A DNA stretch of 63,203 bases, the filler included, from Octopus bimaculoides (lineage: Eukaryota), in NCBI RefSeq assembly GCF_001194135.2. It is 5 parts of 5 records of this genome, joined end to end, with 100 filler letters (N's around TTAATTAATTAA, not from the genome) between each part and the next. Parts side by side here need not be neighbours in the genome. Positions count along the whole stretch, not along the records: positions 1 to 18,627 come from NC_068981.1; 4 more parts are not named here. One strand, given 5' to 3'. Below the pieces are notes generated by a model. It did not search any database. It saw nothing but the letters and a program-made list of their open reading frames with translations, and had not been told where the DNA came from. The position numbers and the translations under genes are program-made. Of this stretch, positions 1-28,949 are shown in pieces; position 1 is the stretch's first letter, and every line of letters begins with the position of its first letter.

Positions 1-265
1 CTTGAATAAAGAATTTTTCTTGGCATGTTATTCTGGATGACTTGGATATGCTTTAGATACACATTCATTATACTAACTTTAACTAATATTCTTTAGCAAT
101 AGACATTGGCAATAAAGAACCAACCAAGTACTGAAATTGATAAAATCGACTCCCGAAACCAGCCGTCCAAATTGGCGGGGGTGTGTGTACCTGTGTTAAA
201 AATCAATATCGGTGCTTTTCAGTCTTTTCGAGTTGATGGCTTACTGGAAATCAATCGAAAGATTA

Positions 266-1250: not shown

Positions 1251-1672
1251 AAATGACAAAAATATAGAAAACTCTTGTTTATCTTACTTCATGAATCATA
1301 TTTGTGTACACAAAATTATGAATAATGTTTTTCAAAGAACTCATGTTTTAGCATGGATTTTCTAAAACCTTGAATTATATTTTTTAAATTTCGTGGTGTC
1401 CCTTGGTGTACGTTGTGACGCAATGTTTGGTAACCTCTGTCTTGACATTACTTAAATTGTAGTTAGGGTGAGGGTTAGGGTTAAACATTGTGGAATTGTA
1501 AAGAAAATTGAAATCGAAGTTCATGTTGGAATATAAAACACGGAGACAGTGGACAGAGGTTATGAAGCTTGACAGAAGGAAATATGCTCGTAAATATGCT
1601 AGGAACAGAAAGGGAAAGGTGAAGAAAAGTTGAGCAAAACAGAGAAAAAAAAAAGTGTGTGTGTGTGTGTAT

Positions 1673-1723
1673 ATCCTTTATCCTTTAGTTTCAGCTCGAG
1701 AGCAGCGGCCATGCTGGGGTACC
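1673..1723 (-). mobile_element. 3' tail fragment of a SINE-A-related element
   Basis: gtttcagctc...gcggccatgctgggg matches the tail of the full copy at 3274-3662 (gtttcagtc...gcggccatgctggagc). Confidence 0.6.
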
Positions 1724-1944
1724 AAACACGCACTGACATATATTATACACAGACATATACATAAACACAAATATATATTTATACATACAGAAAGAGAGAA
1801 AGAGGGGAATCTATCCGTCTATATTTGTGTGTGTATGCAAGCGGTGTTTCAGCAAGTCCTGGCCGTGACAGTTACAGCGAACTAAAGATCCAAATAGATA
1901 CACACACACACACACTTATACATACATATACACACGTACATATA

Positions 1945-2066
1945 ATATATGCATAGATAGTCAGAGAGAGGGGGAGAGAGAGAGAGAGAGTTAGAGAGAG
2001 AGAGAGAGAGAGAGAGAGANNNNNNNNNNNNNNNNNNNNNNNNNNNNNNNNNNNNNNNNNNNNNNN

Positions 2067-2124
<58 letters not shown>
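1945..2124. repeat. (GA)n microsatellite spanning an assembly gap
   Basis: Read directly from the sequence. Confidence 0.95.
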
Positions 2125-2129
<5 letters not shown>

Positions 2130-2206
2130 AAATACCTGAACTAACGTTTCACTACTTTGAAATTCGTTGACAATCATAAAACTAATAATAACTAAAAACC
2201 AAAATA

Positions 2207-2320
2207 ACCGCCGCCGCCACGACGACCACGACCACCACCACCACCACCACCACCAACAGCACAAGCACCAATCACAACAACAGCAACAACTACGACAAAA
2301 GCAGCATTACAACAAATCTG
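2207..2320. repeat. CAC/CAA trinucleotide low-complexity tract
   Basis: Read directly. It accounts for the His/Gln-rich ORF 2167-2424. Confidence 0.85.
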
Positions 2321-2450
2321 AAGATAGCAACCCTTGTTGGCAGAATAAACGATCACTTAACAAATGTAACAACAACAACAAAATCGTAAAGAAAGAAAGG
2401 AAGAAGGAAAAGACAGTCGAGTAACAGAACTTTTTCTGGAAATTTCCACC

Positions 2451-2532
2451 ATGACCGTGTTAGATCACAGGAGGAACTGTTGCTGGTTCGGGTGTATTGT
2501 ATTCTGTATACACACAGTTCTTTCTGGAAAAA
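2451..2532 (+). CDS. Predicted first coding exon (signal peptide) of an orphan single-pass membrane protein
   Basis: Start context CCACCATG. Translates MTVLDHRRNCCWFGCIVFCIHTVLSGK (basic n-region, then hydrophobic h-region). Ends in phase 1 at a consensus GTAAGT donor (2533-2538). Confidence 0.6.
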
Positions 2533-3273
2533 GTAAGTACTGAGATTTATTTATCTTAAGATGTATGTGTATGTGTGTGTGCGCGCGCGTACATATGTGT
2601 GTGTGTGTGAGTGCTGTTGTTGATGCTTTGAATCTGTGGGCGTTGGCGTGGCCATTTTGTTAAGATGTTCGCGTCAGAATAACGAGATTCTGAGTATGCT
2701 TCTAGATTTCAATCACGTCAGACAGATGCCTTCTCCTATTGCCTCCGTTCAATTTAAGTTAAAGATGGGCAACCATTTTCTGGATACGAGCTGCATGAGA
2801 CATGGATCATCATCAGGCATTACTAAAAAAAAAAAACAAAAAAAAACTCAAGGTAATTAATTATATTAATTATTCGTAAAGTGTGCCATTCAGAAAACCT
2901 CGTGTGCTGCAGTTTACCTGCAACAGATTTAAGTCTTGAGAGTGAAAGTAGGCAGACGGAAAAAGAAACAGTAGACACCAGCTGGAGCGAATTTTTGCCT
3001 GGTTTTGGTTGGTAGACTTCTTTCGCTTCTCCAAGTTTATCACCACCACCTAATCCTTAGGTATCTTTAGAAGAGACTATTCCCTGGTAAAAATCCAGAT
3101 TGTTTCTCAAATCTGAGGTTTGCCAACATTATATTTTCGCGTACTGCTTCACATTGCAGCAACGCATTAGCCATGGTTTAACCTCTTTTTCCCTCAACAT
3201 TGTGGGAGTTCCTGCAAAAAGGTAATAAATACTGCTCCTCTTCACTTCACAAAGCTCTACAAAATATATGCTC

Positions 3274-3662
3274 TCTTTTACTCTTTTACTTGTTTCAGTC
3301 ATTTGACTGCGGCCATGCTGGAGCACCGTCTTTTAGTCGAGCAAATCAACCCCAGGACTTATTCTTTGTAAGCCTAGTACTTATTCTGTCGGAAAACTTT
3401 TGCCGAACCGCTAAGTTACGGGGACGTAAACACACCAGCATCGGTTGTCAAGCGATGTTGGGGGGGACAAACACAGACACACACACACACACGCATACAT
3501 ATTTACGACGGGCTTCTTTCAGTTTCCGTCTACCAAATCCACTCACAAGGCTTTGGTCGGCCCGAGGCTATAGTAGAAGACACTTGCCCAAGATGCCACG
3601 CAATGGGACTGAACCTGGAACCATGTGGTTGGTAAGCAAGCTACTTACCACACAGCCACTCC
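3274..3662 (-). mobile_element. SINE-A, full length: tRNA-derived head, CORE-like domain, internal (TG)n, conserved tail
   Basis: On the minus strand: A-box-like tggctgtgtggt, B-box-like ggttcagtccc, then CORE-like tggcatcttgggcaagtgtctt. The tail ends gactgaaacaagtaaaagag. More than 10 related copies occur in the window. Confidence 0.9.
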
Positions 3663-4042
3663 TTAAAAAAATGCATGCTATGGCTTGTCAAAAAATTGAT
3701 ACTAAAGGGCGCAGTGCGTTGATTTGCTTGTTGACCTATAATGCTGTTAGGACGGCCCTGGATCCTGCTTTGGGATGCTTCTATTGTGTTCTGATATCTG
3801 ATTCATTTGATCCGTTGACTGAGATTTCACACAGATTAATTTAGAAACTACTGAAGCTCTGAGGTGCAATTTTCAAACTGTATTATTGATTATTACGCAA
3901 AACAAACATCATATTTTGGCTTTCCAAACTTTGTTTTTCTTTTAGCAAGTGAATGTAGTCTTAATCCATTCGACATATATCTGGACGAGATAGGGAGGTG
4001 TAAACAAAAAAAGACAACACCCAGCAAAAGTAAAAAGGAATT

Positions 4043-4249
4043 ATCATCATCATCATCATCATCATCATCACCATCACCATCATCATCATCATAACCACCA
4101 CAACCACCTCCTCCACCACCGCCGCCGCCGCCGCCGCCGCCACCACCACCACCGTCATCGTCATCGTCATCATCATCATCATCATCATCATCGTCATCAT
4201 CATCATCATCATCATCTAAAGACCGTTGTCCATGCTGGCATAAGTTGGA
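4043..4249 (-). mobile_element. 3' end of a SINE/LINE with an expanded (GAT)n tail (RTE-like tail inferred)
   Basis: The minus strand reads gtccaacttatgccagcatggacaacggtctttagatgatgat. The same motif occurs on the plus strand at 51385-51476. Confidence 0.65.
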
Positions 4250-4580
4250 CNNNNNNNNNNNNNNNNNNNNNNNNNNNNNNNNNNNNNNNNNNNNNNNNNN
4301 NNNNNNNNNNNNNNNNNNNNNNNNNNNNNNNNNNNNNNNNNNNNNNNNNNNNNNNNNNNNNNNNNNNNNNNNNNNNNNNNNNNNNNNNNNNNNNNNNNNN
4401 NNNNNNNNNNNNNNNNNNNNNNNNNNNNNNNNNNNNNNNNNNNNNNNNNNNNNNNNNNNNNNNNNNNNNNNNNNNNNNNNNNNNNNNNNNNNNNNNNNNN
4501 NNNNNNNNNNNNNNGTTAACCCACAGATGGAACCGTAACAGGCGCTACTACTCCGGGTCAGAGTAGCCCTGGGAATAATA

Positions 4581-6549
4581 GTGGCTGTACCACAGTTGGG
4601 GCGATTACACTTTTTTACTTTGGGGCTTGTTGTGGAGGGGAATAATTTTGCATTAGTCGGTAGTTTCTTTAATGACTTAGGTTGTTTATTGCTTTTGACA
4701 ATTTTAGTGTCACGTAAAATTCTTTTTAGTTTTGGGTCCTTGTGTGGTTTTGGTAGGTATTGCATGGTTGTGCTGAATGCTTCTTTGTTTCTGGGGTTGT
4801 ATGTGGAAATGTAGGGTAGTGTTTTAAGGAGAGATTTGTTAATTTCTTGGGGTTTTCTTAATGTCTCGCTGTTGATAGATTTGGCACGTTTTATTCCTTC
4901 ATTAATGAGTTGGATTGGGTAGAGTCTATCGAGGAGGACATTTTTCAGTTCTTGTAGTCTTAAATCTCTAGTTTTTTTCTCTGAGACAATAGTGCAGATT
5001 CTTCTTGCACGGTTGAAGGGGATGTTTGTTTTTGAGTGTCTAGGATGGCAAGAGCTAAAGAGAAAGTATCGTTTTGCATCTGCTGTTTTATAAAATATGT
5101 CTGTTTCGATTTTGTTGTTATTTTATTCTTTTTTTAAAAATTAGAATGTCTAGGAATGGAAGTGCCTCCTGGTTGTATTCCATTGTGAATTGAATGCTTG
5201 TGTGGATGCTACTCAGAAGTGTTTTAAATTCTAGGAGTTTGTTTAAGTTGTTATTCCAGAATACGAAACAGTCATCCAGGTATCTATTCCAATTCTCTTT
5301 AATGCATTGGCCGAGAGGATCTCCAAATTTTCACAGTGAATTCTGATATATGTTTTTCTCTAAGAATCCTATTGTGATGTTGGCAATGGTAGGTGCTGCT
5401 CTCGTGCCCATCACAATTCCCGATATTTGGCAGTAGCAGTTGTCAAAAATGAAATGATTATTCTGGAGAATGAATTTGATTGATTCAATGATGAAGGTTT
5501 TGTTTATTCGTTCTGGTATTTCCTCTGGATGTAATTCTAGCCTGAATCGAATCACTTCCATCCCATATAATCACGTGGAATGTTGGAGTTTAGGTTTATA
5601 ACATCGAAGGAGACCATGATGGATTCTTCCCCAACCTGTTCTGGGAGATGGTTCAGCATGTCTAAATCATCTCTCATGTAGCTTCTAATATGTTTTTGAT
5701 ATGGCTTCGGGAGAATGTCCGTGAAGTAACTTAATCTGTGTGTCTCACAGGATAGGCCAGCTATGATGGGTCATAATTTTAGGTCTCCTGGTGTTGGTGT
5801 ATGTATGTGGTGAGTTGTCGATGGCTTCATTGATGGTTGGGCTTTTGTGGATATTGGAGAGGTTGGGTTTGTATTTGAAATTTGTAAGGAAATCTACTCC
5901 CTTTTTTGTGATGTCTTTCCCGTGGGTATGTATTAGTGAGGAGAGGATTTTCATTATTTTTGGGGGATTGTAGTTGTTGATTTCTTCATAATACTCATTG
6001 TTGTTTAGTAAGGACATGACTAGATTTCTGTAGTAGGATGTGTCTATAATTACCACTGCGTTGCCTTTGTCCGCTTCTTTGATTGTAATTTCTTTATTGT
6101 TTGATAGTTCATTAATTTCTTTCCATTGGATTTTGTTGAGGTTTGGGATGGTTTTTTGTTTGTGCAGGGTGTGATAGGGAAAGTTTTCGATGTATTTGCA
6201 AAATTCATCAAGGCTGTTGCTTCTTTCTTTGTTGGGGGTGTATTGGCTTTTGTTCTTGACCAGTGGTTCATCCTGATCATCAAAGTCGGTCAGGGTCTCT
6301 GCAAGTCTTAATTTCCTGCAGAACTCTGAGATACGGTCTTTAATTTCACTTTGATTGGCTCTGCGAGGTGTCGGTGTGAATTTGAGTCCTTTGGAGAGGA
6401 TGTCTATCTTAATGTTAGATAAGGATAAGTGGGAGAGGTTGATTACGTTGGGTTTCTCCTGTGTCTCGGGTTTCATATTGTTATCTGTTTCCTCTGGTGT
6501 GCGACTAAAAAATGTTGGTTGTTTGGGTATGGGTTGCTTATGGGAGGGG

Positions 6550-6550
<1 letters not shown>
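4581..6550 (-). pseudogene. Penelope-like retroelement, frameshifted and truncated at both ends (RT present, GIY-YIG lost)
   Basis: ORF 5745-6476 has the PLE motifs VINLS, LSKGLKFTPTP and IKEADKGNAVVI. ORF 5331-5561 has the RT motif GIVMGTRAAPTIANI. The C-terminal region ends at KCNRPNCGT, just before where the GIY-YIG endonuclease would lie. Confidence 0.9.
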
Positions 6551-6594
<44 letters not shown>

Positions 6595-6877
6595 TAATCC
6601 AGTATAATATAATATCAATATATACAAACAAAATATACACATGTGTGTATATATGTATGTATATATGTGCATGTGTATGTGAGAGAAAGTGCATGTGTGC
6701 TCGCGTAATTTTTAGATCAATAATCAAGTCGACTAGAAATCCAGAGGACTGTATACTAAGTTAAGTATAGCTGCAGAGCAAATAGTTTTATTGTACTGAT
6801 TCAACGTTTAGTAAAGAATGCCAGTGTATAAAACTATATCATTGTGACTTTTAATAATCATTTCCTTCTATTTCTAG

Positions 6878-7368
6878 ACGAAACGAGTACTTTATCACCA
6901 CCTTTGTTAGAAGAATGGAAGATTCTCTACTACAAGCTGCCAATTACCGTTGTGGTGATCATCTTTTTAGCCAGTACTTCCATTCTTGTGTCACGTCTAG
7001 TAGACAGAGTCTATAACACTTACAAAGACAACTGGGCTATACGTGAAGATGTCACTGATGTAAACTATCAAACAAAAGAGCTGATTAGAAACAAAATGAA
7101 GGTCAATGCTGAGACAGACACCGATGATTCCGGAGTTACCAACGTTTGGCTAAAGAAATACATAAATCTTTGGATGCAACGTGTTGCCGAGACAAAGCGT
7201 ACTGAAAGAGTTTCTAATGTCATCACATCGCAGCATAGGAAAAGCGTATCGGTGGCTGGCCCATCAGAAATGGTGGAACCAGATGTTATCTCTCATGTGG
7301 TCGTGATTGAAGTTGGATCTAGTCGATGTCCTTCGAACAGTGACCTTAAAGCAACTGGATATATATAA
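6878..7368 (+). CDS. Predicted terminal coding exon: short ectodomain, transmembrane helix and cytoplasmic tail
   Basis: Non-repetitive 174-aa open frame. Pyrimidine-rich acceptor tttccttctatttctAG ends at 6877 in phase 1, matching exon 2451-2532. 82+491 nt = 191 codons. Hydrophobic stretch LPITVVVIIFLASTSILVS. Confidence 0.7.
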
Positions 7369-7573
7369 CTGTCGGCTTTTATATTACTTATAACAAAGAC
7401 TTATTGTTAAAATTGACGCGTGTTTCTATTCGATGGTTTGATTATAATTTCTACTCAAACGTTTGAGATTTCAAGACTTCGCTGCTGGCAGTAAAATGTA
7501 TGATTTCCTTATGAAGAAAAGAGGGAAAAGCGATTATGTTTATTTAATTTTTACTTTGTACTCTAAGAATTAC

Positions 7574-7651
<78 letters not shown>

Positions 7652-7777
7652 TGATGATGATGAAATTAACCCCTTCAATCACAGCTATTTTATCGCGTTC
7701 CATTTCTTGGGAAATTACAACGCAAATGTTTCTAACGGATATTGCAATATTGATACAGAAAGAGGCACACCTTGAAC

Positions 7778-7825
<48 letters not shown>
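7574..7825. repeat. (GA)n and (GT)n microsatellites
   Basis: Read directly from the sequence. Confidence 0.9.
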
Positions 7826-8552
7826 TGGGTATGTATGTATGTGCGTGTATGCATTTATGTATAGAATAAAAAGTTTTGAATGGTACAACAATGCACTATA
7901 ATACAAAAAATGGACTATATACTTGTTGTAATTTGGTTATCTATAGTCCGATGATATTTCGGAATACAATTCCTTCTTCAGATATTCTTAGATGGAGTCT
8001 GTGCTATAAACTGTTTACCAACGGCTTTTCTTTTTTTTTCGGAAACGTCTCAGTAGTGGTCTCACGAAGCTTCTTCCGGAATTCCTCATGATGCATATAT
8101 CTGTGTATGTATGTCTCCATGTATATATGCATGTATGTGTGTGTATGTATATATGTAAGTATGTATGTATGAGCGACACTGATAACATGTAACTGAAAAC
8201 AACCAGTGACATGGCCAGATCGCCGTCGACTAAAATGGTGATTCACTACGTCTGCTTAGTCTGAAGGATGATATCTGGACACCTTGACGAAACCTGTGAA
8301 AATTGGGATGAAGTGAGGTGAGTCAACGACCATTTAATAAACAAAGAAGAAATTAGAAAAATAACAGAATGGCCAATGGTATGTATTTCAACAACACAGA
8401 CAAATACAGGTATTTCAAACATCATACAGCGTAAATTCTTGATTTATCTAAATAATCTCCGCCTGTAGACGATGTATCGTAATTATCAAATCACAATTGT
8501 GATCAGCTCTACTTGAGAAGGGGAGATAACCTCAAGACTCATAGCTTATTTT

Positions 8553-9117
8553 TTATTCTTTTACTCGTTTCAGTCATTTGACTGCGGCCATGCTGGAGCA
8601 CCGCCTTAAAGAGTTTTAGCCGAAGTAATCGACTCCAGGACTTATTCTTTCTAAGCCTAGTATATATTCTATCGGGAATTTTTGCCGAACCACTTGGTTA
8701 CGGTGAGGTAAACACACCAACATCAGTTGTCAAGCGATGATGGTGGTGGTGGTGGTGGGGGGGGGGACAAACACAGGCACAAAAACACACATACATAAAT
8801 ACACACACACAAACACACACATACACGCATAAACACACACATATACGCACAAACACACGACGAGCTTCTTTCAGTTTCCGTCTTCCAGGTTCACTCAGAG
8901 GGCTTNNNNNNNNNNNNNNNNNNNNNNNNNNNNNNNNNNNNNNNNNNNNNNNNNNNNNNNNNNNNNNNNNNNNNNNNNNNNNNNNNNNNNNNNNNNNNNN
9001 NNNNNNNNNNNNNNNNNNNNNNNNNNNNNNNNNNNNNNNNNNNNNNNNNNNNNNNNNNNNNNNNNNNNNNNNNNNNNNNNNNNNNNNNNNNNNNNNNNNN
9101 NNNNNNNNNNNNNNNNN

Positions 9118-9168
<51 letters not shown>

Positions 9169-9335
9169 GCACGCACGCATACGCACACTTGCACACACAC
9201 ACGACGGGCTTCTTTCAGTTTCTGTCTACCAGATCCACTCATAAGGCTTTGGTTGGTCCCAGTCTATAGTAGAAGACAGTCACACACTCGCCCAAGGCGC
9301 CACACAGTGGGACTGAACCCGGAACCTTGTGGTTA
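8553..9335 (-). mobile_element. SINE-A copy or copies across a gap
   Basis: The tail and body lie at 8553-8905. A second CORE/head segment (9203-9335) follows the gap and a (CA)n tract. Confidence 0.8.
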
Positions 9336-10185
9336 AATTATGCAAATTACTTTGGCCATAAATGTGTTCTACTCTGTTTTATTTAAATCTAACTCACTTG
9401 GCCACTGGAAGTAAGGTTGAATAAATTATTGTACTGCAATGGAGAAAGAAACGTTTGTCCACAACCGTCCTCTTATCTCCAGACAATAAGCCTGTTTTTT
9501 TTTTCTTCCATAATGGCATGGCAACTTTTGCATAATTCTCGACTCTTTAGATTATCTCCCCTTCTCAAGTGGAACTGATCTTAAATGCCATTTGCTGATT
9601 ATAATAAATTCTCTAGAGATGGGGATAATTTTAATAAATCAAGGATATATGTTGTATGGTACTTGATATACCTGTATTTGGCTAATGTGCGTATGTATGC
9701 ACATGCATACATATGTGTTTTTATGTGTACATGGCAGAAGAACGCTCTCACTTGGAGCCTTCGCTGTCTGGTCTTCGTATCTTTTCACAACCAACGGAGC
9801 GCGAAGCGCTCCTCACGAACGTAGTTTGTGAGATGGTTGTGATCTGTAAACAGTTTTGAGTAGGAACCGGAAAAAAAAACAACAACAAAAAAGAATGAAC
9901 ACACAATGCGCATGTGCACACTCAATTCGTAAAACAGAAGACAAGAATAAGCACGCAATGCGCATGTCAAAACAAAACGGAAAGGAAGAATAAAAACGCA
10001 ATGTCATGTAGGTTATAAGATGGTCTGCATGGCACGTCTGACACCAGCTTTGCTGCAATTTTCTTGTTTGTTTTGTTTGTTGGTAGTTTAACGGCTTCGA
10101 ACATCCAGAAACACACGCGTTGCACAAGCGTTTGTCACTATAAAATGGGATGTTTGCCACTTTTTGCACCCCCCTTCTATTTATT

Positions 10186-10391
10186 CTCTTATTCTTTTAC
10201 CCTTTTATTCGTTTCAGTAATTTGACTGCGGCCATGCTGGAGCACCGCCTTTAGTCGAACAAATCGACCCCAGGACTAATTCTTTGTAAGCCTAGTACTT
10301 ATGCCGAACCGCTAGGCTACGGCGACCTAAACACACCAGCATGGTTGTCAAGCGATGTTGGTGGGGGCAGGGGAACAAACACAGACACGCA
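10186..10391 (-). mobile_element. SINE-A 3' half, running into a gap
   Basis: Closely matches the tail of the copy at 3274-3662. Confidence 0.85.
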
Positions 10392-11103
10392 NNNNNNNNN
10401 NNNNNNNNNNNNNNNNNNNNNNNNNNNNNNNNNNNNNNNNNNNNNNNNNNNNNNNNNNNNNNNNNNNNNNNNNNNNNNNNNNNNNNNNNNNNNNNNNNNN
10501 NNNNNNNNNNNNNNNNNNNNNNNNNNNNNNNNNNNNNNNNNNNNNNNNNNNNNNNNNNNNNNNNNNNNNNNNNNNNNNNNNNNNNNNNNNNNNNNNNNNN
10601 NNNNNNNNNNNNNNNNNNNNNNNNNNNNNNNNNNNNNNNNNNNNNNNNNNNNNNNNNNNNNNNNNNNNNNNNNNNNNNNNNNNNNNNNNNNNNNNNNNNN
10701 NNNNNNNNNNNNNNNNNNNNNNNNNNNNNNNNNNNNNNNNNNNNNNNNNNNNNNNNNNNNNNNNNNNNNNNNNNNNNNNNNNNNNNNNNNNNNNNNNNNN
10801 NNNNNNNNNNNNNNNNNNNNNNNNNNNNNNNNNNNNNNNNNNNNNNNNNNNNNNNNNNNNNNNNNNNNNNNNNNNNNNNNNNNNNNNNNNNNNNNNNNNN
10901 NNNNNNNNNNNNNNNNNNNNNNNNNNNNNNNNNNNNNNNNNNNNNNNNNNNNNNNNNNNNNNNNNNNNNNNNNNNNNNNNNNNNNNNNNNNNNNNNNNNN
11001 NACACACACACATACCGCTACATTAGATAAATATTCCTCTCTACGTTGACTTGTCTAATAATTCTATGATTCAAGTACATATACATACTCACGCGCACAC
11101 GCG

Positions 11104-11146
<43 letters not shown>

Positions 11147-11534
11147 AAGAGGAAATGGAAGACATTTTGATGAACAAAGAAAATGAAACATTAAATTAAA
11201 TATTTATATCAAACGAATGAAAATACAAGTTTGAAATGTAAAAAAACACGCGCAACAAAACAAAACAAAAAAACAAGACAAAAACAAAGCAAAAAAAGCA
11301 ACAAAAAAGCAAAAATGACGCATGGACTATGGACATTTATTTAGAGGCAAAAATAAATAATTTAGTTTATTATTCCTGGTGAAATAAATATTTATAAGAA
11401 TGACAATATAAAGGAATAATTAAATAAACACATAAATAAAGAAATTTAAAAGAAAATAAAGGAAACGAGTGATTCTGTGACCTGTGATATCTATGACAGT
11501 TTATATACCTGTGTACTCTAGGTACAAGAGCTGA

Positions 11535-12165
11535 AGTTTCGGGGTAGAAGGATTAGGGTTACATCGACCCCAGTACTTAACTGGTACTTATTTCATAGAC
11601 CCCGGAAGGATGAAAAGCAAAGTTGATCTCGGCTGAATTTGAACTCAGAACATAAAGACAGACGAAATGGCGCAAAGCATTTTGTCCGGCATGCCATCGA
11701 TTCTTGTCAGCTCACCGCCATTTACGGCAGTGTATTGTGGTTTCAAATTTTGGCACAAGGCCAGTAGATTTTGGGTTAGGGGTAAGTCGTTCTACTGGTA
11801 CCCATTTTATCGACAGCAAAAGGATGAAAGGCAAAGTTGACCTCGGTGGAATTTGAACTCAGAACGTAAAGACGGACGAAATACCGCTAAGGACTTTACC
11901 CGGCGCGCTAACGATTCTACCAGCTCACCGCTTTTTATGACGGTATATATTTATTTCTTTATTGCCCACAGGGGGCTAAACATAGAGGGGACAAACAAGG
12001 ACAGACATCGACCCCAGTGCGTAACTGGTACTTATCTAATCGACCCCGAAAGGATGAAATGCAAAGACGACCTTGGCAGAATTTGAACTCAGAACGTAAC
12101 GGCAGACGAAATACCACTAGGCAGTTCGCCCGGAGTGCTAACGACTCCGCCAGCACGCCGCCCTT
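11535..12165 (-). mobile_element. Three head-to-tail copies of SINE-B (about 200 bp, tRNA-derived)
   Basis: Copies lie at about 11535-11722, 11740-11931 and 11952-12165. All share aggatgaaa-gcaaag-tgacctcg-gaatttgaactcagaac. The third is flanked by tgaYggtatatatt at 11938-11951 and 12167-12180. Confidence 0.85.
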
Positions 12166-12206
12166 GTGATGGTATATATTGATATTACGAAAAACTATTT
12201 AGATAC

Positions 12207-12373
12207 TCTTTTATTTTTTTACTTGTTTCAGTCATTTGACTGTGGCCATGCTGGAGCACCACCTTTAGTCGAGCAAATCGACGCCAAGACTTATTCTTTG
12301 TAAGTCTAGTACTTATTCTATCGGTCTCTTTTGCCGAACCGCTAGGTTACGGGGACGTAAACACACCAGCATC
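12207..12373 (-). mobile_element. SINE-A 3' part, running into a gap
   Basis: Near-identical to the tail of the copy at 3274-3662. Confidence 0.85.
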
Positions 12374-13191
12374 NNNNNNNNNNNNNNNNNNNNNNNNNNN
12401 NNNNNNNNNNNNNNNNNNNNNNNNNNNNNNNNNNNNNNNNNNNNNNNNNNNNNNNNNNNNNNNNNNNNNNNNNNNNNNNNNNNNNNNNNNNNNNNNNNNN
12501 NNNNNNNNNNNNNNNNNNNNNNNNNNNNNNNNNNNNNNNNNNNNNNNNNNNNNNNNNNNNNNNNNNNNNNNNNNNNNNNNNNNNNNNNNNNNNNNNNNNN
12601 NNNNNNNNNNNNNNNNNNNNNNNNNNNNNNNNNNNNNNNNNNNNNNNNNNNNNNNNNNNNNNNNNNNNNNNNNNNNNNNNNNNNNNNNNNNNNNNNNNNN
12701 NNNNNNNNNNNNNNNNNNNNNNNNNNNNNNNNNNNNNNNNNNNNNNNNNNNNNNNNNNNNNNNNNNNNNNNNNNNNNNNNNNNNNNNNNNNNNNNNNNNN
12801 NNNNNNNNNNNNNNNNNNNNNNNNNNNNNNNNNNNNNNNNNNNNNNNNNNNNNNNNNNNNNNNNNNNNNNNNNNNNNNNNNNNNNNNNNNNNNNNNNNNN
12901 NNNNNNNNNNNNNNNNNNNNNNNNNNNNNNNNNNNNNNNNNNNNNNNNNNNNNNNNNNNNNNNNNNNNNNNNNNNNNNNNNNNNNNNNNNNNNNNNNNNN
13001 NNNNNNNNNNNNNNNNNNNNNNNNNNNNNNNNNNNNNNNNNNNNNNNNNNNNNNNNNNNNNNNNNNNNNNNNNNNNNNNNNNNNNNNNNNNNNNNNNNNN
13101 NNNNNNNNNNNNNNNNNNNNNNNNNNNNNNNNNNNNNNNNNNNNNNNNNNNNNNNNNNNNNNNNNNNNNNNNNNNNNNNNNNNNNNNNNNN

Positions 13192-13255
<64 letters not shown>

Positions 13256-13424
13256 ACCTTCTTATGTGACCGGTATTTCATTAATTGACCCCATAGTTGA
13301 CCTCAGCGGAGATTAAACTCATGATGTAGAGAGCTGAAACAGATACTGCACGGCAGCCTATCCGATTTTCTAACGATATCCTACCCATTCGCCGTCTTCA
13401 TATCAGTGCAAATAATAGTAGTAT

Positions 13425-13700
13425 CTTTACTTTTTACTTGTTTCAAGCATGAGACAGCGGCCATGCTGGGGCACCGTCTAGGAGAATTTTGATCGAACAA
13501 ATCAACTCCAGTACTTACGTTTTCTTTCTTTTTTAAAGTCTGCTACTCATTTTATTAGTCGCTTTTGCTGAACCGCTAAGTTACGGGACCTAAACAAACC
13601 AACATCGGTTGTCAAAGAATGTGGTGGCAAAAACAAACACAGACACACACATGTACATACATACATACATACATACATACATACATACATACATACATAC
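13425..13700 (-). mobile_element. Diverged SINE-A-related 3' part with internal (ACAT)n
   Basis: Contains gcggccatgctggggcacc, gaaccgctaagttacggg and catcggttgtca. Confidence 0.75.
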
Positions 13701-13704
13701 GCAC

Positions 13705-13960
13705 GCACGATTTCGAGATCATGGTTTCAATTCCTGGACAGGGTGACGTGCTGTGTTTTGAGCAAAACACTTCATCTCAAGTTGCTCACCGATCACTTCA
13801 ACAACCGTCGTATGATACCCTATGCACCTGCTCAGGCAATATCGATGTAATGGCGCGATTGAGCTAATAATGTACAGCACAGAGATTTGATCAGTATAAA
13901 CAAATTATTTGTGCAGATTGTTCAGCAAGAAACCGCAGAACCGTGTTTCTTGGATTACGA
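13705..13960 (+). mobile_element. Diverged CORE-like SINE (family D)
   Basis: B-box-like ggtttcaattcc is followed by tgtgttttgagcaaaacacttcatctca. A related remnant lies on the minus strand at about 15020-15170. Confidence 0.5.
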
Positions 13961-14470
13961 GAGATTACCATCAATATGCATAAAACCGCTGAAACTGGAG
14001 TTTATCGTCAACATTATGATATGGTTTTGTAGCGCTTAGACGTGTTTAACATCTACTGACTCGCTGAGGTTGGAGTTATTAATGATAGATAGCTAAGCAA
14101 TACTTTCTTACATAGGCACTTGGCCAGAAATTTTGACAGCAGGCAGCAAATCCATGATCATCTCAGTATTAGACTGGTACTTTATTCTATCGATCCCAGA
14201 AGGACGAAAGGCATGATTGATCTCAGTGTGATTTGAATTCAAACCGGAACAAAGAGGCGGAACAAATACCGAAAGCTTTTCTTTCCGTGATTTAACGACC
14301 TCACGACCCCACTATCCGTGCCTGCTTTTATGAAATTACAGAGAAAAATAAACAAAAACAATGCCACATAGTTGCATTATATTTATTTGCTTGTCTTTTT
14401 TATTATTATTTATCAATTTATTATTCATTTTTATTCATCTATTATTTTAAAAGATATATCTTTCTATATA

Positions 14471-14850
14471 GTGGAGGCGCAATGGCCCAGTGCTTAGGGC
14501 AGCGGACTTGCGGTCGTAGGACCGCGGTTTCGATTTCCAGACCGGGCATTGTGAGTGTTTATTGAGTGAAAACACCCAAAGTTCCACGAGGCTCCGGCAG
14601 GGGATGGTGGTGAACCCTGCTGTACTCTTTCACCACAACTTTCTCCCACTCTTTCTTCCTATTTCTGTTGTGCCTGTAATTCAAAGGGCCAGCCTTGTCA
14701 CACTGTGTCACGCTGAATCTCCCCGAGAACTACGTTAAGGTTACACGTGTCTGTGGAGTGCTCAGCCACTTGCACATTAATTTCACGAGCAGGCTGTTCC
14801 GTTGATCGGATCAACTGGAACCCTCGTCGTCGTAACCGACGGAGTGCCAA
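14471..14850 (+). mobile_element. SINE-C, full length, tRNA-derived, with a perfect 11-bp TSD
   Basis: A-box tggcccagtgc and B-box ggtttcgatttcc. The TSD ctttctatata is at 14460-14470 and 14851-14861. Confidence 0.9.
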
Positions 14851-16236
14851 CTTTCTATATAAAAGTCATACCCGTCACTTGGAAGCGAGTGTGACAAGGT
14901 ACGATACTATCACTAATTGTTTTAGGTGACTATGTAATCAGTAACAGGCATAGACGCCTTCTCGGCCGTCCCACCCTTCACCCAGTAGAACAGGTATGTG
15001 GAGGGAGAGAGAGGACTCCTAACACAAGGCTGGTACTAATTTTTCAGCGGAGTAGACTGAATCAACGCGAAATAAAGCGCTTTGCTCGAGAAAACAACGC
15101 AGTATTCAGTTCAGTATCGAACCTACGACGTTATGATTGTGAGCTTAACGTCTCTAACCACTAGATCAAGCATCTTTCCAGTGTATCGTCAAAAGTACAT
15201 TATTAAACGTGTCTTTATATTTCAAAGACAGTAATATATTTCTGTTGCATCTCGGGAGGGTCATTGTGCCAATAATAAACACACGCACTGATTAAATCTC
15301 ACGTGTATAAAAATTTTTTCTATTTTGTTATGCTTCTGTTGTGTAATTTCTCTAAATGCTGTTGCTGTACTGTTGCACCATTTGGATACAGTTCAGTGGG
15401 CTGTCTATCGGCATTCTGCAGGACTTGTGCTTTGGAAGGCATGCTATCTCACATTATTTTAATTTTAAATTTCGTAGGCCGTTTGCTATCTCTACCGAGA
15501 CACCAAAAAATATATATTCCAACACACAAGTACACATCAAGAATCCTGTGAACCTAAGACAAAAACGAAATGTATTTTTTACAGAATGCAAACCCTTAAA
15601 ACACGATTATTTAAAGTTAATCAACAATGCTAGTTCCGTGCATCGTTAACTAGCCAGAGGAGATGTCCTCTTGGAGTTAAAATATCTCAGTAGAATCCGT
15701 TCGAATAGACAGCCATATTAAAATGAGGATTTGAAACAAAGGGAGAGCACTTTTACACGAAATATAACAGAGTTACTCCCAGTAAAATTGTATTTTAAGA
15801 CGTATGCCAACATGCGGTTTGAGAAGATCACTCAAGACGCGTGGTTGATCAGAGACAGATGCTCATATTTATGGTATCTAGTTTCTGCTCGATAATTATT
15901 CTAATTTCAAGGCCGGCCGGTGTTTATTGTGTTTTTTGTTTTAATCTCCCTTCTCGAGTTGATACAAACACCTATCGGTCTTAAATTGCTGTAGATTCAA
16001 TAAAAAATAGGCTTTGCAAATTGTGAGAAAATATTTTTAAGAAGAGAGGTATTAGTTTACTATTTACTACGCGGCCCTAAAAAGAATAAAAAATAAACAA
16101 GCTGGCCGGGCTTAATAGTAAAATAATAGCAAAAATAAATAATAATAGAACTACAAAATAAACCATACAATGGAAGCCACTTATTGTAATCACCTCGGAA
16201 CGGAGCCGTTTCTATAACGATAGCAGGCAGATATTA

Positions 16237-16454
16237 CTGGTTTCAAATTTTGGCTCAAAGTCAGCAATTTCAAGGTAGAGGATAAGTCAATTATATCGAC
16301 CCCCGTGCTCGGCTGGAACTTATTTTATAGACCCCGAAAGGATGAAAGGTAAAGTCGATCTCGGCCGGATTTGAACTGGGAACGTAAAGACGGACGAAAT
16401 GCCACTTGTCATTTTTGCCCTGCGCGGAAAGAATTCTGCTAGCATGTCGCCTTA
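16237..16454 (-). mobile_element. SINE-B copy
   Basis: Same core as the copies at 11535-12165. Confidence 0.85.
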
Positions 16455-16497
16455 TGTAGGAGACACCAATTTTGATATCAATATTCGTTCGATAACA

Positions 16498-16709
16498 AGG
16501 CGGCGAGCTGGCAGAAACGATAGCACGCCGGGTGAAATGCTTAGCGGTATTTCGTCTGCCGCTACATTCTGAGTTCAAATTCCGTCGAGGTCGACTTTGC
16601 CTTTCATCCTTTCGGGGTCGATAAATTAAGTACCAGTTGCATACTGGAGTCGATCTAATCGACTGGCCCCCTCCTCCAGAATTTCGGACCTGTGCCTAGA
16701 GTAGAAAAG
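16498..16709 (+). mobile_element. SINE-B, full length, with an 18-bp TSD
   Basis: A-box-like gagctggcagaa and B-box gagttcaaattcc. The TSD aatattcgttYgataaca is at 16480-16497 and 16710-16727. Confidence 0.9.
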
Positions 16710-17331
16710 AATATTCGTTTGATAACATTATCTGTGATTACAATATACGACCTTCCTTGTGATAGGTTTTCGAGAACGAATGGATATATAACATATATAA
16801 CAGGTATTTTACATCTGTTTTAGTGAAGTAATAGAGAGAGCTTCTATGTCAATGCTTCCCTACCTGGGAATTTATTTCAATGGGTCTTAAAAATTCAAAT
16901 AGAACACCACTTGCCTTTAAATACCAATACAGAAAAATTGTGTACGTGTGTGTGTGTGTGTGTAGCGGGGGGAGTGGGCGGATGCTAGCCGATCCAGAGT
17001 TTGTGCTGGACAAAAGGTGCTCAATGTGAACACTTTGATTTGCTAGAAATAGCAAACAAATTTCCCTCAAAAGACAGCCTACCGTTTAAAACAAAGTAAA
17101 TAAAGAAAGACATATTGGATAAATAAATAAGTAATTAAATAAGTAAATAAACACATTGGATAATGTTGTCCCAGAAAAAAAAAAAAATAAAAGCAAGGAA
17201 AACCGGCCCTTGGATTTGCTAGAAATAGCAGGTCGAAAAACGAAATAAGGTTGGTCTGTTGTCTTGTGAATATGTATTTTGTTTACATTACTTACATTCG
17301 ACGGATATTTATCCTCATCTTGTTTGTTGTT

Positions 17332-17377
17332 AACACAACGTTTCGGCTGATATACCCTCCAGCCTTCATCGGGTGTC
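17332..17377 (-). ncRNA. Minimal type I hammerhead ribozyme (core variant CCGAUGA)
   Basis: GACAC-CCGATGA-A-GGCTG-gagggtatat-CAGCC-GAAA-CG-TT-GTGTT: stem I GACAC/GTGTT, stem II GGCTG/CAGCC, cleavage triplet GUU. Confidence 0.75.
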
Positions 17378-17424
17378 TTGGGGAAATTCTGAAACTGGTT
17401 TCTCATTCGTAAGGTAGTTTTCGA

Positions 17425-17507
<83 letters not shown>

Positions 17508-17512
<5 letters not shown>

Positions 17513-17583
17513 ATCACTGCCTGGAATCGAACTCGGAATCTTGTGGTTAGTAGCCCGCGCTATTAACCACTACACCATATGCC
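17508..17583 (-). ncRNA. tRNA-Arg(ACG)-like Pol III head (SINE-type, not a functional tRNA)
   Basis: A-box tggtgtagtggt and B-box gagttcgattcc. The segment aagattccgagttcgattcc resembles the variable/T arm of eukaryotic tRNA-Arg(ACG). The anticodon loop reads ctactaa. Confidence 0.7.
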
Positions 17584-17618
17584 TAAGGAATGAGAACCCA
17601 GGTTCGAAAATTCCCCAA

Positions 17619-17664
17619 GACACCCGATGAAGGCTGGAGGGTATATCAGCCGAAACGTTGTGTT
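17619..17664 (+). ncRNA. Minimal type I hammerhead ribozyme (core variant CCGAUGA)
   Basis: Identical to the reverse complement of 17332-17377. Confidence 0.75.
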
Positions 17665-18059
17665 AACAACAAAGATGAGGACAAATATCCGTCAATTGTA
17701 AATAATGTAAATAATGTACATAATTCCTCATCTCTTAAATATATCATAGAACTGTATGTATTTTGTTGTTTATATTCAGCCAGCCATGATGAAGAGTTTC
17801 TATAAACTGACCCTTTCCAGCCATCTCGCCCTTTGTTTCCCCAGATAGTGTTTCTTGAACTACATTGCGTTCGTATATTTATGACTCTAGAGTGACTTCA
17901 GAGAGATTTGGCTGCTATTCCGAGCAGATCGCGACACTACATAGAAGTTCTTTATTTGTTGCAGTTCATTTGCCATCCCGAGGTCAGCCATAGTCAGGCG
18001 AAACCCCGAACAAAGACGTTCCAGCCCTGCCGAGCTTCATAAGAAAAGGAAAAAAAAAA

Positions 18060-18215
18060 AAATCATTGTGTGGTTAAGAAACTCGCTTTTCTACCACGTG
18101 GTTTCACGTTCAGTCCCATTGCGCGGTGCCTTGGACATGTGTCTTCTATTATAGGTCCGGCAGACCAACGCCTTGTGTATGAGTTTGATAGACGGAATCT
18201 GTGACAAGCCTGTCG
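18060..18215 (+). mobile_element. Diverged SINE-A head and CORE region
   Basis: tgtgtggttaagaa...gttcagtccc...gccttggacatgtgtcttcta. Confidence 0.7.
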
Positions 18216-18671
18216 TGTAATATATTTATATATATATATAAATGTAGTGAACGACCGTGCGAACTCAAAAAGGAGAAATGGTGACGAATGGAAAAACAGA
18301 GGACTCCTTTTATTTAAACGTGTCACACGGTCGAACACAAAAATATATATCAATGATGATATACATGATATGTTATACGACGATAACATAGATGACCAGT
18401 AATGAAAGACCACAACCGTATAAGATGAATAACAGAAATATTTATTATGGCGTTAAAGATGTATGTCTGTGTGTGAGTGTGAATGCGACATATAAGAACA
18501 TAATCAAAGACAGGCCGTCGTACAAAGAAAAGTATGTATGTGAGTGATACATGTATGTGTATGTGAGTTATTACAGCAGATGGAAAGAGAGTCAATAACA
18601 CGTGAGCAATTATACCAGTTCTTTAGTNNNNNNNNNNNNNNNNNNNNNNNNNNNNNNNNNNNNNNNNNNNN

Positions 18672-25470: not shown

Positions 25471-27160
25471 GATTTTTAAAATGACATAACTTCTCTTCTC
25501 ATTACTTATCAGGACTGACACAGCAAAGCCTGGCACACTGATAGATTGGAGACATCGACGCAAAAGAATATAATGGGAAAAAAAATGCCATAGCAAAGAA
25601 CTACATAACTGCAAAACATACTATCATAAGGCTAGCCAATCGATACTTTGAACAAGTGGCAATATCAATGTTTTAACGGAAACTAGTTTGAATACGTGAA
25701 GTGTCTTTAATTGGTGTATGTTTCGGTGTCGTTGTATGTCTGTGTTGTCAGTTCATCAGAAACAAGCAATGAACAATATAGATAGAGATGAGGCTTTCAG
25801 ATGTCTTTGTTGATGTTTGCATCCACCAGAGTGAGTAATTCGATTGAGAAATAATCGAAGCGAAATTCAATGATCTGTAAATTAAACTTTTAAATAATGT
25901 CCACATAAAGGAAATATTAAAAAAGAATCAATCAACAAAATTAAATGGATTATTTTGACCTCAATTTATTGTTTCCCCAACATTTTGGAAGCATTCGTTC
26001 TCTTTACATGTGAAAATTTTATTTTAATCATAGACACCAAGTTGCTTCATCAGTTCTTGTAAACCCCAGGGTTCTGTTATATTACCTAAGCGTCCCAGTA
26101 TAACCATTAATGGTTTACATGTCACCGCTGACAGTTCGCACTTCAGTGCAAAAAATGATGCTTCTAACACTTTCTTAACCATCAGCAGACTGGCATCAGT
26201 TACACCATCTAGAGAAAAATTTGCTTACATTAATACACATTAACGAAACATTCTCTAAATAGAGCATCCTCAATCTTGTCTCCTTCGACAACTCAAGGTG
26301 AAAATCACTGCAGATAACTAAAAAACAATCTACCTCGGCCTTGGACAAAATGAAAATATAACTCGATCATGTTACAAATGATAAACTACTTTGGTGAGCT
26401 TATGTAAAAAAAAAAAAAAACAGAACACAGAAACAAGCTTTCAGAGATTAGTCTTCCTCCTTCGTATCGCAAAATGCTTCAACCACAAAAAGTTGCTCAT
26501 TCTCTACAAAATATCAGTGAGACCGAAGTTAGTATAATGCTCCAAAATATGATGTAGCGATGTTGTTATATATATACGAACAACCTACAATGCGGCTAAA
26601 AAAACATAAGCCATCGATGCAGCTAATCTCAAGGATGCAATTACCAAATTTTGTCTCACAGTGCTTTGTCTCTTTAGTGGGCTTTTTATGCTGTTTCTAC
26701 AAATACCCCTGTACCACAGAGTTAACTGACTGCATAATATCTCCATTCAAAGTCCCTTAGCACCCTCTTATCCCTATGCAAATCGCATCCTCTTTTCACA
26801 CGTTCACAGTCTCACCAAATTCTGAATTAACCATTATACCAATCATCTACCAAAATAGTAACACTTTGCAAATCACAAATCACCGGCCGTGCATTTTCCG
26901 ACGCAGGCATCGCTCAACCTTAACGTTAATTACATTATTCTGACCAAGTAAGGGAAGGAGAGCTGTGTGGTTATGTACATAATCTCTTCTTTAGAGAAAA
27001 CATGAAAAACCCTGCACATATCGATCCAATAAAACTGATTTGCTAGATGTAAAATTGTTTATTTATCATTGAGTGAGATGAAATTTTGTAACGACACGCC
27101 CCTTACATAATTTACATTATTTACAGTTGACGGATATTTGTCCTCATCTTGTATTTTGTT

Positions 27161-27206
27161 AACACTACATTTCGGCTGATATACCCTCCAGCCTTCATCA
27201 GGTGTC
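27161..27206 (-). ncRNA. Minimal type I hammerhead ribozyme with canonical CUGAUGA core
   Basis: GACAC-CTGATGA-A-GGCTG-loop-CAGCC-GAAA-TG-TA-GTGTT, cleavage triplet GUA. Confidence 0.8.
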
Positions 27207-27282
27207 TTGGGGGAAATTTCGAACCTGGGTTCTCATTCCTAAAGTATTTTTCAATGTTGTTGTTGTTGTTGTTGTTGTTGTT

Positions 27283-27323
<41 letters not shown>

Positions 27324-27325
27324 CA

Positions 27326-27377
<52 letters not shown>

Positions 27378-27379
27378 GA

Positions 27380-27409
<30 letters not shown>

Positions 27410-27410
<1 letters not shown>

Positions 27411-27486
27411 TCAGGTCACTGCATGGAATCGAACGCGGAATCTTGGGGTTAGTAGCCCGCGCACTTAATCACTACGCCATATGCCC
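27410..27486 (-). ncRNA. tRNA-Arg-like Pol III head
   Basis: gggcatatggcgtagtgattaag...aagattccgcgttcgattcc, homologous to 17508-17583. Confidence 0.7.
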
Positions 27487-27525
27487 GTGGGCATCTGGCG
27501 TAGTGACCTGAATAACAATAATAAC

Positions 27526-27576
<51 letters not shown>

Positions 27577-27578
<2 letters not shown>

Positions 27579-28600
27579 CAAACAAGAAATCAATCTACCT
27601 AACAAATACGAAGAAGAAGAAGAAGAAGAAGAAGAAGAAGAAGAAGAAGAAGAAGAAGAAGAAGAAGAAGAAGAAGAAGAAGAAACAACAAAAGCTATAA
27701 AACAAATGAAATCCAAACTAAAACTAGAACAGCAACGGACCATGATAAAACGATGGCAAGAAAAGCCCCTACATGGTAAATACTGGGCTAANNNNNNNNN
27801 NNNNNNNNNNNNNNNNNNNNNNNNNNNNNNNNNNNNNNNNNNNNNNNNNNNNNNNNNNNNNNNNNNNNNNNNNNNNNNNNNNNNNNNNNNNNNNNNNNNN
27901 NNNNNNNNNNNNNNNNNNNNNNNNNNNNNNNNNNNNNNNNNNNNNNNNNNNNNNNNNNNNNNNNNNNNNNNNNNNNNNNNNNNNNNNNNNNNNNNNNNNN
28001 NNNNNNNNNNNNNNNNNNNNNNNNNNNNNNNNNNNNNNNNNNNNNNNNNNNNNNNNNNNNNNNNNNNNNNNNNNNNNNNNNNNNNNNNNNNNNNNNNNNN
28101 NNNNNNNNNNNNNNNNNNNNNNNNNNNNNNNNNNNNNNNNNNNNNNNNNNNNNNNNNNNNNNNNNNNNNNNNNNNNNNNNNNNNNNNNNNNNNNNNNNNN
28201 NNNNNNNNNNNNNNNNNNNNNNNNNNNNNNNNNNNNNNNNNNNNNNNNNNNNNNNNNNNNNNNNNNNNNNNNNNNNNNNNNNNNNNNNNNNNNNNNNNNN
28301 NNNNNNNNNNNNNNNNNNNNNNNNNNNNNNNNNNNNNNNNNNNNNNNNNNNNNNNNNNNNNNNNNNNNNNNNNNNNNNNNNNNNNNNNNNNNAAATACAT
28401 AACAAAAACACCAGGACTTACAAATATATATAACATACAGAAAATTGCACTACTGGGTACTGCACACATTCTACGCAAAACACTTTCAATACAGTAAACA
28501 TAAGAGCACCACAGCAAACCACAGCACATACCCAAGGCGCACAGAGCTGCGCTCGGTAGTGAAGTGAAAGCACGTTATAAAAATAAAACTACTGAACAAT
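27577..28600 (+). mobile_element. 5'-truncated R4/Dong-clade (RLE) non-LTR retrotransposon inserted in (AAT)n
   Basis: Translates WQEKPLHGKYW before the gap and IQKIALLGTAHILRKTLSIQ* after it, motifs typical of R4/Dong C-termini. The 3'UTR ends in (AAT)n. Confidence 0.8.
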
Positions 28601-28660
28601 AATAATAATAATATCGAGAAATACCTTAGGAATGAGAACCCAAGTTCGAAATTTCCCCAA

Positions 28661-28706
28661 GACACCTGATGAAGGCTGGAGGGTATATCAGCCGAAACAT
28701 AGTGTT
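28661..28706 (+). ncRNA. Minimal type I hammerhead ribozyme with canonical core and a mutated stem III
   Basis: GACAC-CTGATGA-A-GGCTG-loop-CAGCC-GAAA-CA-TA-GTGTT. Confidence 0.72.
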
Positions 28707-28949
28707 AACAACAAACAAGTTGAGGACAAATATCCGTCAAATGTAAATAACGTAAATAATATACGTAGTTCCTCCTCTCTTAAATATAGAACAGCCCCTT
28801 ACATAGTTGGCTTTAATCATGCATTTCTAATCTGAAGTTAATTACTTGCCACGTTCATCAAACCTGAGGCTTTTTTGATATAACAGGTTTGTGACTTCTG
28901 TGACGCACGGAATAGGAAAGAAGAAACGAAGGGGGTCTAGTAATTAGAA

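Follow-up and report, generated by a model that had tools for sequence, protein, structure and literature searches.

Results

In this study, we describe a short repeated element of Octopus bimaculoides in which a putative tRNA-like head is joined to a minimal hammerhead motif, and which is inserted at positions 17271-17767 of a joined stretch of 63,203 nucleotides (the window). The DNA analysed here is the first part of the window, the 18.6-kb piece of NC_068981.1 (positions 1-18,627). The insertion is bracketed by a perfect 13-bp target site duplication (TSD), TATGTATTTTGTT, which abuts both element ends at 17271-17283 and 17755-17767 (13/13 identical), and we estimate the chance of agreeing 13-mers at both ends at <1e-5. 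Between the TSDs lie two head-to-head copies, a full copy on the minus strand and a 5'-truncated copy on the plus strand, whose 3' ends face outward and whose 5' ends are joined at 17583/17584. Read from 17583 downwards, the minus copy is composed of the tRNA-related head (17508-17583), a spacer of (TAA)27.7 (17427-17509; period 3 and 100% pure by TRF, (TTA)27.7 on the plus strand), and a body at 17284-17426 that contains a linker (17426 to ~17378), the hammerhead (17377 to 17332) and the short form of an AT-rich 3' region (17331 to 17284), which is ~55 nt long and stops exactly at the left TSD. The body is 89% identical to the plus copy, and eight further copies, all on other contigs of octopods, can be aligned with it.

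The plus copy (17584-17709), which was delimited by BLAST, pairwise alignment and a descriptor match with core start 17624, begins within the linker and continues through the hammerhead (17619-17664) into the 3' region, and its hammerhead and 3' region are 89% identical to those of the minus copy. In the alignment it runs 36-45 nt past the minus-copy 3' end to the right TSD, the exact extra length varying with the alignment chosen for the AATAATGTA duplication. This additional 3' tail (17710-17754, plus strand) is present at the locus in the plus copy only, and the same tail (..CATAATTCCTCATCTCTTAAATATAGAAC..) occurs in relatives. The 3' termini thus read ...AATAATGTA or ...TATAGAACTG, and neither carries a repeat, poly(A) or microsatellite. 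The inverted arms, 17315-17414 and 17582-17681, are 90% complementary, and BLAST stretches them to ~131 nt at 89%; no further copies of the element were found by BLAST in the 18.6-kb piece. An earlier note on this DNA had proposed this order of modules (A and B boxes, (TAA)n, linker, minimal hammerhead, AT-rich tail), the fusion of a full minus copy to a 5'-truncated plus copy, and the perfect 13-bp TSD around the pair; all of these are borne out, with the modules lying where the note had placed them. The two further copies of the note (27110-27486 and 27489-28793) lie beyond the 18.6-kb piece; the order itself was found independently in other octopod sequences (below).

The head is 76 nt long (minus strand, 17583 to 17508; GGCATATGGTGTAGTGGTTAATAGCGCGGGCTACTAACCACAAGATTCCGAGTTCGATTCCAGGCAGTGATCTGAA) and contains an A-box-like motif, TGGTGTAGTGG, and a B-box-like motif, AGTTCGATTCC, which lie ~43 nt apart, a tRNA-like spacing. 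ARAGORN at default settings called no tRNA in the 18.6-kb piece or in any of the fetched loci, and no cloverleaf fold is obtained for the single head. The consensus of seven heads of the family is called as a weak tRNA with anticodon ACT at the 80% threshold of ARAGORN, a level that 5/1000 shuffles reach. The head also shows ~65% mean column identity to the heads of an abundant CORE-type short interspersed nuclear element (SINE) in the same piece. The relaxed-threshold call, the box motifs and the likeness to the CORE-type SINE heads therefore lead us to read the head as tRNA-derived, and it may, on a call made at the relaxed threshold only, be regarded as weakly tRNA-like. Of the tRNA-Arg-like head that had been proposed, the tRNA-like part stands for the family consensus at the 80% ARAGORN threshold, where the anticodon reads ACT. 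'Arg' is an unproven lead, in view of a resemblance to tRNA-Arg and of ACT being one change from ACG. Judging from the motifs, RNA polymerase III (Pol III) may transcribe the element.

Both arms carry the same hammerhead RNA, 5'-GACAC-C-C-G-A-U-G-A-A-GGCUGG-AGGGUAUA-UCAGCC-G-A-A-A-CG-U-U|GUGUU. Helix I is GACAC/GUGUU (5 bp) and helix II is GGCUG(G)/(U)CAGCC (5-6 bp), and both are returned by the minimum-energy fold. In the minus copy, where the descriptor places the core start at 17372, cleavage of this type-I hammerhead is predicted after U17, between 17337 and 17336. The core, C3-U4-G5-A6-N7-G8-A9...G12-A13-A14, A15.1...U16.1-H17, is satisfied in the locus copies except at U4. When both strands of the 18.6-kb piece were scanned, the descriptor matched twice only, at the two arms, against a background of 0.017 matches per dinucleotide-shuffled piece, and 0/300 shuffles were as good as observed. 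The hammerhead further has an additional A between A9 and G10.1; G10.1 pairs with C11.1, and where helix III would be there is only the bare palindrome A-CG-U. No other part of the family is as well conserved, and the arms differ at 15/86 aligned positions outside the hammerhead and at 0/46 inside it (Fisher p = 0.0012).

The traits of the minimal hammerhead ribozymes (min-HHRs) of Penelope-like elements (PLEs) were listed by Cervera & de la Pena (2014; PMC4209133), and action as dimers was proposed for them. Four of these traits are matched in the octopus motif beyond what the descriptor demands. By its extra base after A9, its G10.1-C11.1 pair, its short helix I and its palindromic 15.2/16.2 positions without loop 3, the motif fits the Penelope min-HHR type. 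The minimal hammerhead of the earlier note is present in both arms, with helices I and II recovered in the fold and with C, not U, at core position 4.

A scan of metagenomes for GAUGAAGGCUG..CAGCCGAAACG returned 22 loci in host-associated JGI/ENA contigs (L001-L022), in 21/22 of which the motif is preceded by CU. The canonical-core min-HHRs of these loci share helix II, GGCUG/CAGCC, with the octopus element. In three contigs (L003, L008, L012) the min-HHR lies ~100 nt downstream of open reading frames (ORFs) matching GIY-YIG, and in L002 it lies ~1.5 kb downstream of an ORF with RVT_1 and GIY-YIG domains.

One reading frame runs open through the body, and its translation was used as a query against an exhaustive HMMER protein library, in which 275 proteins match it (E<=0.001). 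Among them, an O. bimaculoides UniProt entry (P0093) is 80% identical to the plus copy, long tail included. The RefSeq protein XP_052825882.1 (P0105), annotated as O. bimaculoides 'dystrobrevin beta isoform X1', has its first ~33 residues translated from an element copy in which the start of a head is fused to the hammerhead and 3' region; either the copy was exonised to form an alternative first exon, or the annotation is in error. An initial protein search with the minus-copy peptide gave no candidates, two scans of viral contigs found no octopus hammerhead element, and no copy is present in 20 kb of Octopus vulgaris (L023), in the Argonauta contig (L026) or in an ENA contig (L025).

At the DNA level, copies of the element are borne by seven distinct octopod read-assembly contigs (runs SRR11869384-94), which have other octopus repeats in common with the 18.6-kb piece and with O. 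vulgaris. The order of head, A/T-rich spacer, ATCAGGAATGAGAAACC linker, hammerhead and tail recurs in five copies (L027+, L035, L036, L038+, L038-), and homologous heads can be aligned in seven copies. The spacer differs from copy to copy, being a shorter, impure AAT/AAC repeat or A11; the (TAA)28 spacer at 17427-17509 is, judged from these copies, a local expansion. The long tail is found again in L035, L037, L040, P0093, P0101 and P0108. Solo unidirectional copies are present in L035, L036 and L038, and a search for a TSD around the solo L035 copy found no exact flanking repeat of at least 7 nt. Inverted or head-to-head pairs also occur elsewhere (L027, L040, P0101), and the two full-length heads of L027 meet at their 5' ends, exactly or to within 1-2 bases. 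The unit that emerges is ~300 nt long, with a head of ~75 nt, a variable A/T-rich spacer, a linker of ~50-65 nt, the hammerhead, a 3' region of ~55 nt and an optional tail of ~36-45 nt. As in a SINE, the unit is short, non-coding, multi-copy and dispersed, and it is flanked at 17271-17767 by a 13-bp TSD. The matching proteins, the seven contigs and the five copies with the same order agree with the earlier description of a multi-copy, non-autonomous element. The note knew of no description in cephalopods, and full-text literature searches found none of a tRNA-headed hammerhead element in this group.

A related family with a different arrangement was observed in ENA contigs of 190-350 kb (P0094, P0095, P0097-P0100, P0107, P0113 and others). 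Its tandem units are only ~129 nt long and contain a CUGAAGA...GAAACG hammerhead followed by a stretch that is homologous between units; single ORF calls span 2-3 of them, an arrangement like that of retrozymes but with very small units. Many of its proteins open with a conserved MANGIRTGDPRGFNKGRSSKF leader.

The 18.6-kb piece contains a PLE of its own, a degenerate, frameshifted element on the minus strand at 4515-6476, with an N-terminal ORF at 5745-6476 and reverse transcriptase (RT) pieces down to 4515. Its 3' part is lost in the assembly gap 4251-4514, and (TA)n occupies 6549-6594. Its relatives, which include O. vulgaris and Argonauta hians proteins, have RVT_1, GIY-YIG and HTH_animal domains. 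The descriptor found no hammerhead in the 4515-6476 element. The LINE-like sequences that were compared (LINE, long interspersed nuclear element) showed no similarity to the octopus element.

Discussion

Published PLE insertions often consist of a main copy beside an inverted, 5'-truncated copy, with a 'tail' of 30-40 bp at one end only. In vitro, the Anolis PLE protein begins reverse transcription at two internal sites whose separation is the tail length, a signature that has been called unique to PLEs, and it cuts and extends both target strands and favours AT-rich DNA. At 17271-17767 the same 3' terminus occurs twice and faces outward, and the TSD fixes one short and one long end. The 13-bp target is AT-rich, and neither end has an A-tail or microsatellite. 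We therefore regard the locus as likely to be one insertion from an octopod family of non-autonomous retroelements, with Penelope-type copying as the proposed route. The junction at 17583/17584 coincides exactly with the 5' end of the head, and junctions at the head's first base suggest that the template RNAs had their 5' end fixed at this base, which would fit either a Pol III start or a tRNA-like 5' processing event. The pair is most simply read as the product of one event that copied two different RNAs of the family with a like, conserved ribozyme, because the arms differ at 0/46 positions in the hammerhead and at 15/86 outside it and are enclosed by a perfect TSD; the alternatives are chance or gene conversion.

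We tentatively propose, as a possibility that falls somewhat short of an even chance, that the family is an octopod 'PLE-SINE', a Pol III-driven, tRNA-headed element that parasitises PLE RT through its hammerhead 3' module and inserts pairwise, its RNAs being primed from the two strands of the target. In the explanation of the locus that we regard as likely, an RNA whose first base is that of the head would be bound via its 3' module by a PLE RT/GIY-YIG protein, which would make cuts 13 bp apart in the two strands of an AT-rich target. Reverse transcription would then be primed from both DNA ends, at either of the two internal RNA start sites; one cDNA would reach the 5' end of its template and give the full minus copy, the other would halt in the linker and give the plus copy, and the two would be joined head to head. 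The claim of the earlier note that PLE rather than LINE machinery is used is in agreement with the anatomy of the insertion; a matching autonomous PLE was not found among the PLEs compared. The octopus element may insert by means of PLE enzymes, and its dependence on PLEs is well motivated but unproven.

Several results weigh against the Penelope-type reading of the insertion. The body and 3' module are unlike the 4515-6476 PLE and those of L023 (O. vulgaris), L024, L026 (Argonauta) and L041, a handful of PLEs only, and a clear hammerhead is missing from these same elements. No long PLE ORF is present among the best 150 of the 275 protein matches, and a 13-bp TSD is equally typical of LINE-driven insertion. 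Covariation over ten largely decayed copies was not above shuffles, with two compensatory cells and 78% of cells paired; L027, with helix II GGGUG/CGCCC against GGCUG/CAGCC at the locus, supplies one compensatory pair. Position 4 is C, not U, in both locus hammerheads (U4C). U4 is kept in 7/8 related copies (L040 reads CUC-AUGA), so that the C4 of the locus is taken as derived. Perreault et al. note that U4C considerably lowers in vitro activity while still permitting viroid infectivity, and the U4C hammerhead of the 17271-17767 copies is probably a poor catalyst. PLE min-HHRs themselves cleave poorly in vitro, possibly requiring protein, and for PLE insertion in vitro catalysis is dispensable. 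Lastly, Rfam reported neither hammerhead nor tRNA in the 18.6-kb piece, the head alone or four related contigs, at gathering scores and at E<=10. The earlier note had suggested the Rfam hammerhead models as a check, and the check gave no match even at E<=10; the control loci were likewise missed, as 0/20 tested canonical-core min-HHR loci matched Rfam 15 at gathering scores. The Rfam hammerhead negative carries little weight because Rfam misses canonical min-HHRs that lie beside PLE ORFs.

(TAA)n is associated with Dong-type LINEs. We consider it unlikely that the element is an ordinary tRNA-SINE dependent on a LINE (e.g., Dong/R4, RTE or CR1), with a hammerhead-like motif that is there by coincidence and an inverted pair produced through twin priming. 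Such an explanation would account for the lack of an identified partner among the PLEs compared and for the absence of an Rfam hammerhead match, the 13-bp TSD suits LINE target-primed reverse transcription, and Dong-R4 elements have been published as abundant and recently active in O. vulgaris. However, the (TAA)n of the octopus element is internal and its 3' ends lack an A-tail or microsatellite, and twin priming of the L1 type inverts an upstream segment and does not double the 3' terminus. A choice of two 3' ends ~40 nt apart has been described as unique to PLEs, and conservation within the family is highest in the hammerhead, which has four PLE min-HHR traits that the descriptor does not demand.

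The earlier note had also offered the label retrozyme. In a non-LTR retrozyme, multimeric transcripts would be cut by the hammerhead and circularised by tRNA ligase, and the circles would serve as templates for retrotransposition; for the octopus family we find this improbable, slightly more so than the LINE-dependent explanation. Animal non-LTR retrozymes (Cervera & de la Pena 2020; PMC7229834) are likewise non-autonomous, hammerhead-bearing and low in GC, with units of ~170-400 nt, which the ~300-nt unit, low GC and type-I hammerhead of the octopus family resemble, and a related library family does form ~129-nt tandem units, each with a hammerhead (P0094, P0095, P0097-P0100). Retrozymes have also been argued to be non-autonomous PLE derivatives that arose from pseudo-long terminal repeats (pLTRs) (Li et al. 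2026 preprint, 10.64898/2026.07.22.740005). Yet tandem repeats from which circular RNAs arise are the defining feature of retrozymes, and these have no tRNA head, whereas the octopus copies have a head and a defined 5' end at that head. No tandem copies were seen in the 18.6-kb piece or in the seven contigs, where copies are solo or inverted, which makes the label a poor fit. With one hammerhead per transcript the release of a monomer is impossible, the ribozymes of inverted pairs lie on opposite strands, and both locus copies carry U4C.

The least tenable explanation, with a very small probability, is a one-off chimera or a foldback element of the MITE (miniature inverted-repeat transposable element) kind that trapped a tRNA-SINE fragment and a microsatellite and has no head-to-tail family unit: although the locus alone looks like a core of (TTA)n and a tRNA-like part between terminal inverted repeats of 131 nt, with a TSD, both forms were rejected and are ruled out because solo unidirectional copies exist (L035 and L036, with L038 as a further copy in the same order), and, in addition, heads are homologous across seven copies and the arms are of unequal length at their outer ends, unlike terminal inverted repeats.

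The octopod family described here has its closest parallels in flatworms and in PLEs themselves. According to published summaries, the Sm-alpha/Sj-alpha elements of schistosomes are SINE-like and combine a Pol III promoter with a canonical hammerhead (Ferbeyre 1998; Laha 2000, summarised in PMC6765202 and PMC8490949). In these accounts they share with the octopus family a short, non-coding, dispersed unit of ~300-335 nt, in which a Pol III-type promoter region, putative in octopus, is followed by a type-I hammerhead. The Sm-alpha hammerhead is there presented as a canonical, fast ribozyme with loop-loop contacts, often in tandem, whereas the octopus family has a PLE min-HHR in solo copies or inverted pairs; the octopus family also differs from Sm-alpha, as the latter is summarised, in its A/T-rich (TAA)n spacer, its explicit PLE insertion signatures and its host phylum. 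With the min-HHRs of PLE pLTRs (Cervera & de la Pena 2014, PMC4209133; Frangieh 2024, PMC11167929) the octopus element has in common the ribozyme architecture, the inverted 5'-truncated partner, the tail of 30-40 bp and the AT-rich targets, and in the PLE min-HHR literature Schistosoma min-HHRs are found on opposite strands, 100-700 bp apart. The octopus module is joined to a tRNA-like head, whereas PLE min-HHRs are joined to an RT/endonuclease ORF, and the octopus locus has U4C. The family is a cephalopod relative, apparently undescribed, of the Sm-alpha SINEs and of non-LTR retrozymes.

Octopus possesses other tRNA-derived SINEs, OR1, OR2 and OK, reportedly described by Ohshima and Okada in 1994. 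These and the CORE-type octopus SINE share a tRNA-related head with the hammerhead element. Those other SINEs have a CORE domain and a GTAAAA/GAGTAAAA-like 3' repeat, in contrast to the hammerhead family, which has no CORE and two alternative, unrepeated 3' ends. An abundant tRNA-headed CORE-like SINE with GTAAAA-type ends is present in the 18.6-kb piece at 3272-3665 (minus strand), 8546-8730, 10190-10302, 12204-12373, 13432-13525 and 18060-18160, and seven copies of it are present in the 20 kb of O. vulgaris (L023).

SINEs are defined through their dependence on LINEs, and PLEs are a third class of retroelements whose mechanism is only starting to be understood. If the octopod PLE-SINE is real, PLE machinery would be open to hijacking by Pol III transcripts outside flatworms, the family would represent a class that current SINE definitions do not cover, and, as a compact 300-nt natural substrate with a defined 5' end, a conserved hammerhead and both PLE 3' termini, it would help to map which RNA features the PLE protein recognises. 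In O. vulgaris, recent activity has been reported for PLEs, with 30 Penelope families (31 Penelope-like in all), and 893 SINE families are unclassified. The octopus element may help towards classifying part of these ~900 'unclassified SINE' families. If the U4C subfamily still moves, nature would provide evidence that mobilisation can do without catalysis by the ribozyme.

Other features of the 18.6-kb piece

The piece contains five N runs, which are assembly gaps and mostly adjoin microsatellites (2020-2066, 4251-4514, 8906-9117, 10392-11001 and 12374-13191); ORFs that span them are artefacts. A tandem array at 262-1255 has nested periods of ~32 and ~172 bp with the core unit CTTTGCATGGAAAATTAAAAATTAC. 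A further repeat family at 11559-12162 and 16260-16689 comprises three direct copies and inverted copies 4.3-4.8 kb apart; its repeats are 141-156 nt long and 81-85% identical, and they include a local inverted pair, 16260-16414 / 16535-16689. Just upstream of the hammerhead element insertion, a near-identical direct repeat of 22 nt, CTTKGATTTGCTAGAAATAGCA, occurs at 17033-17054 and 17209-17230, 176 bp apart.

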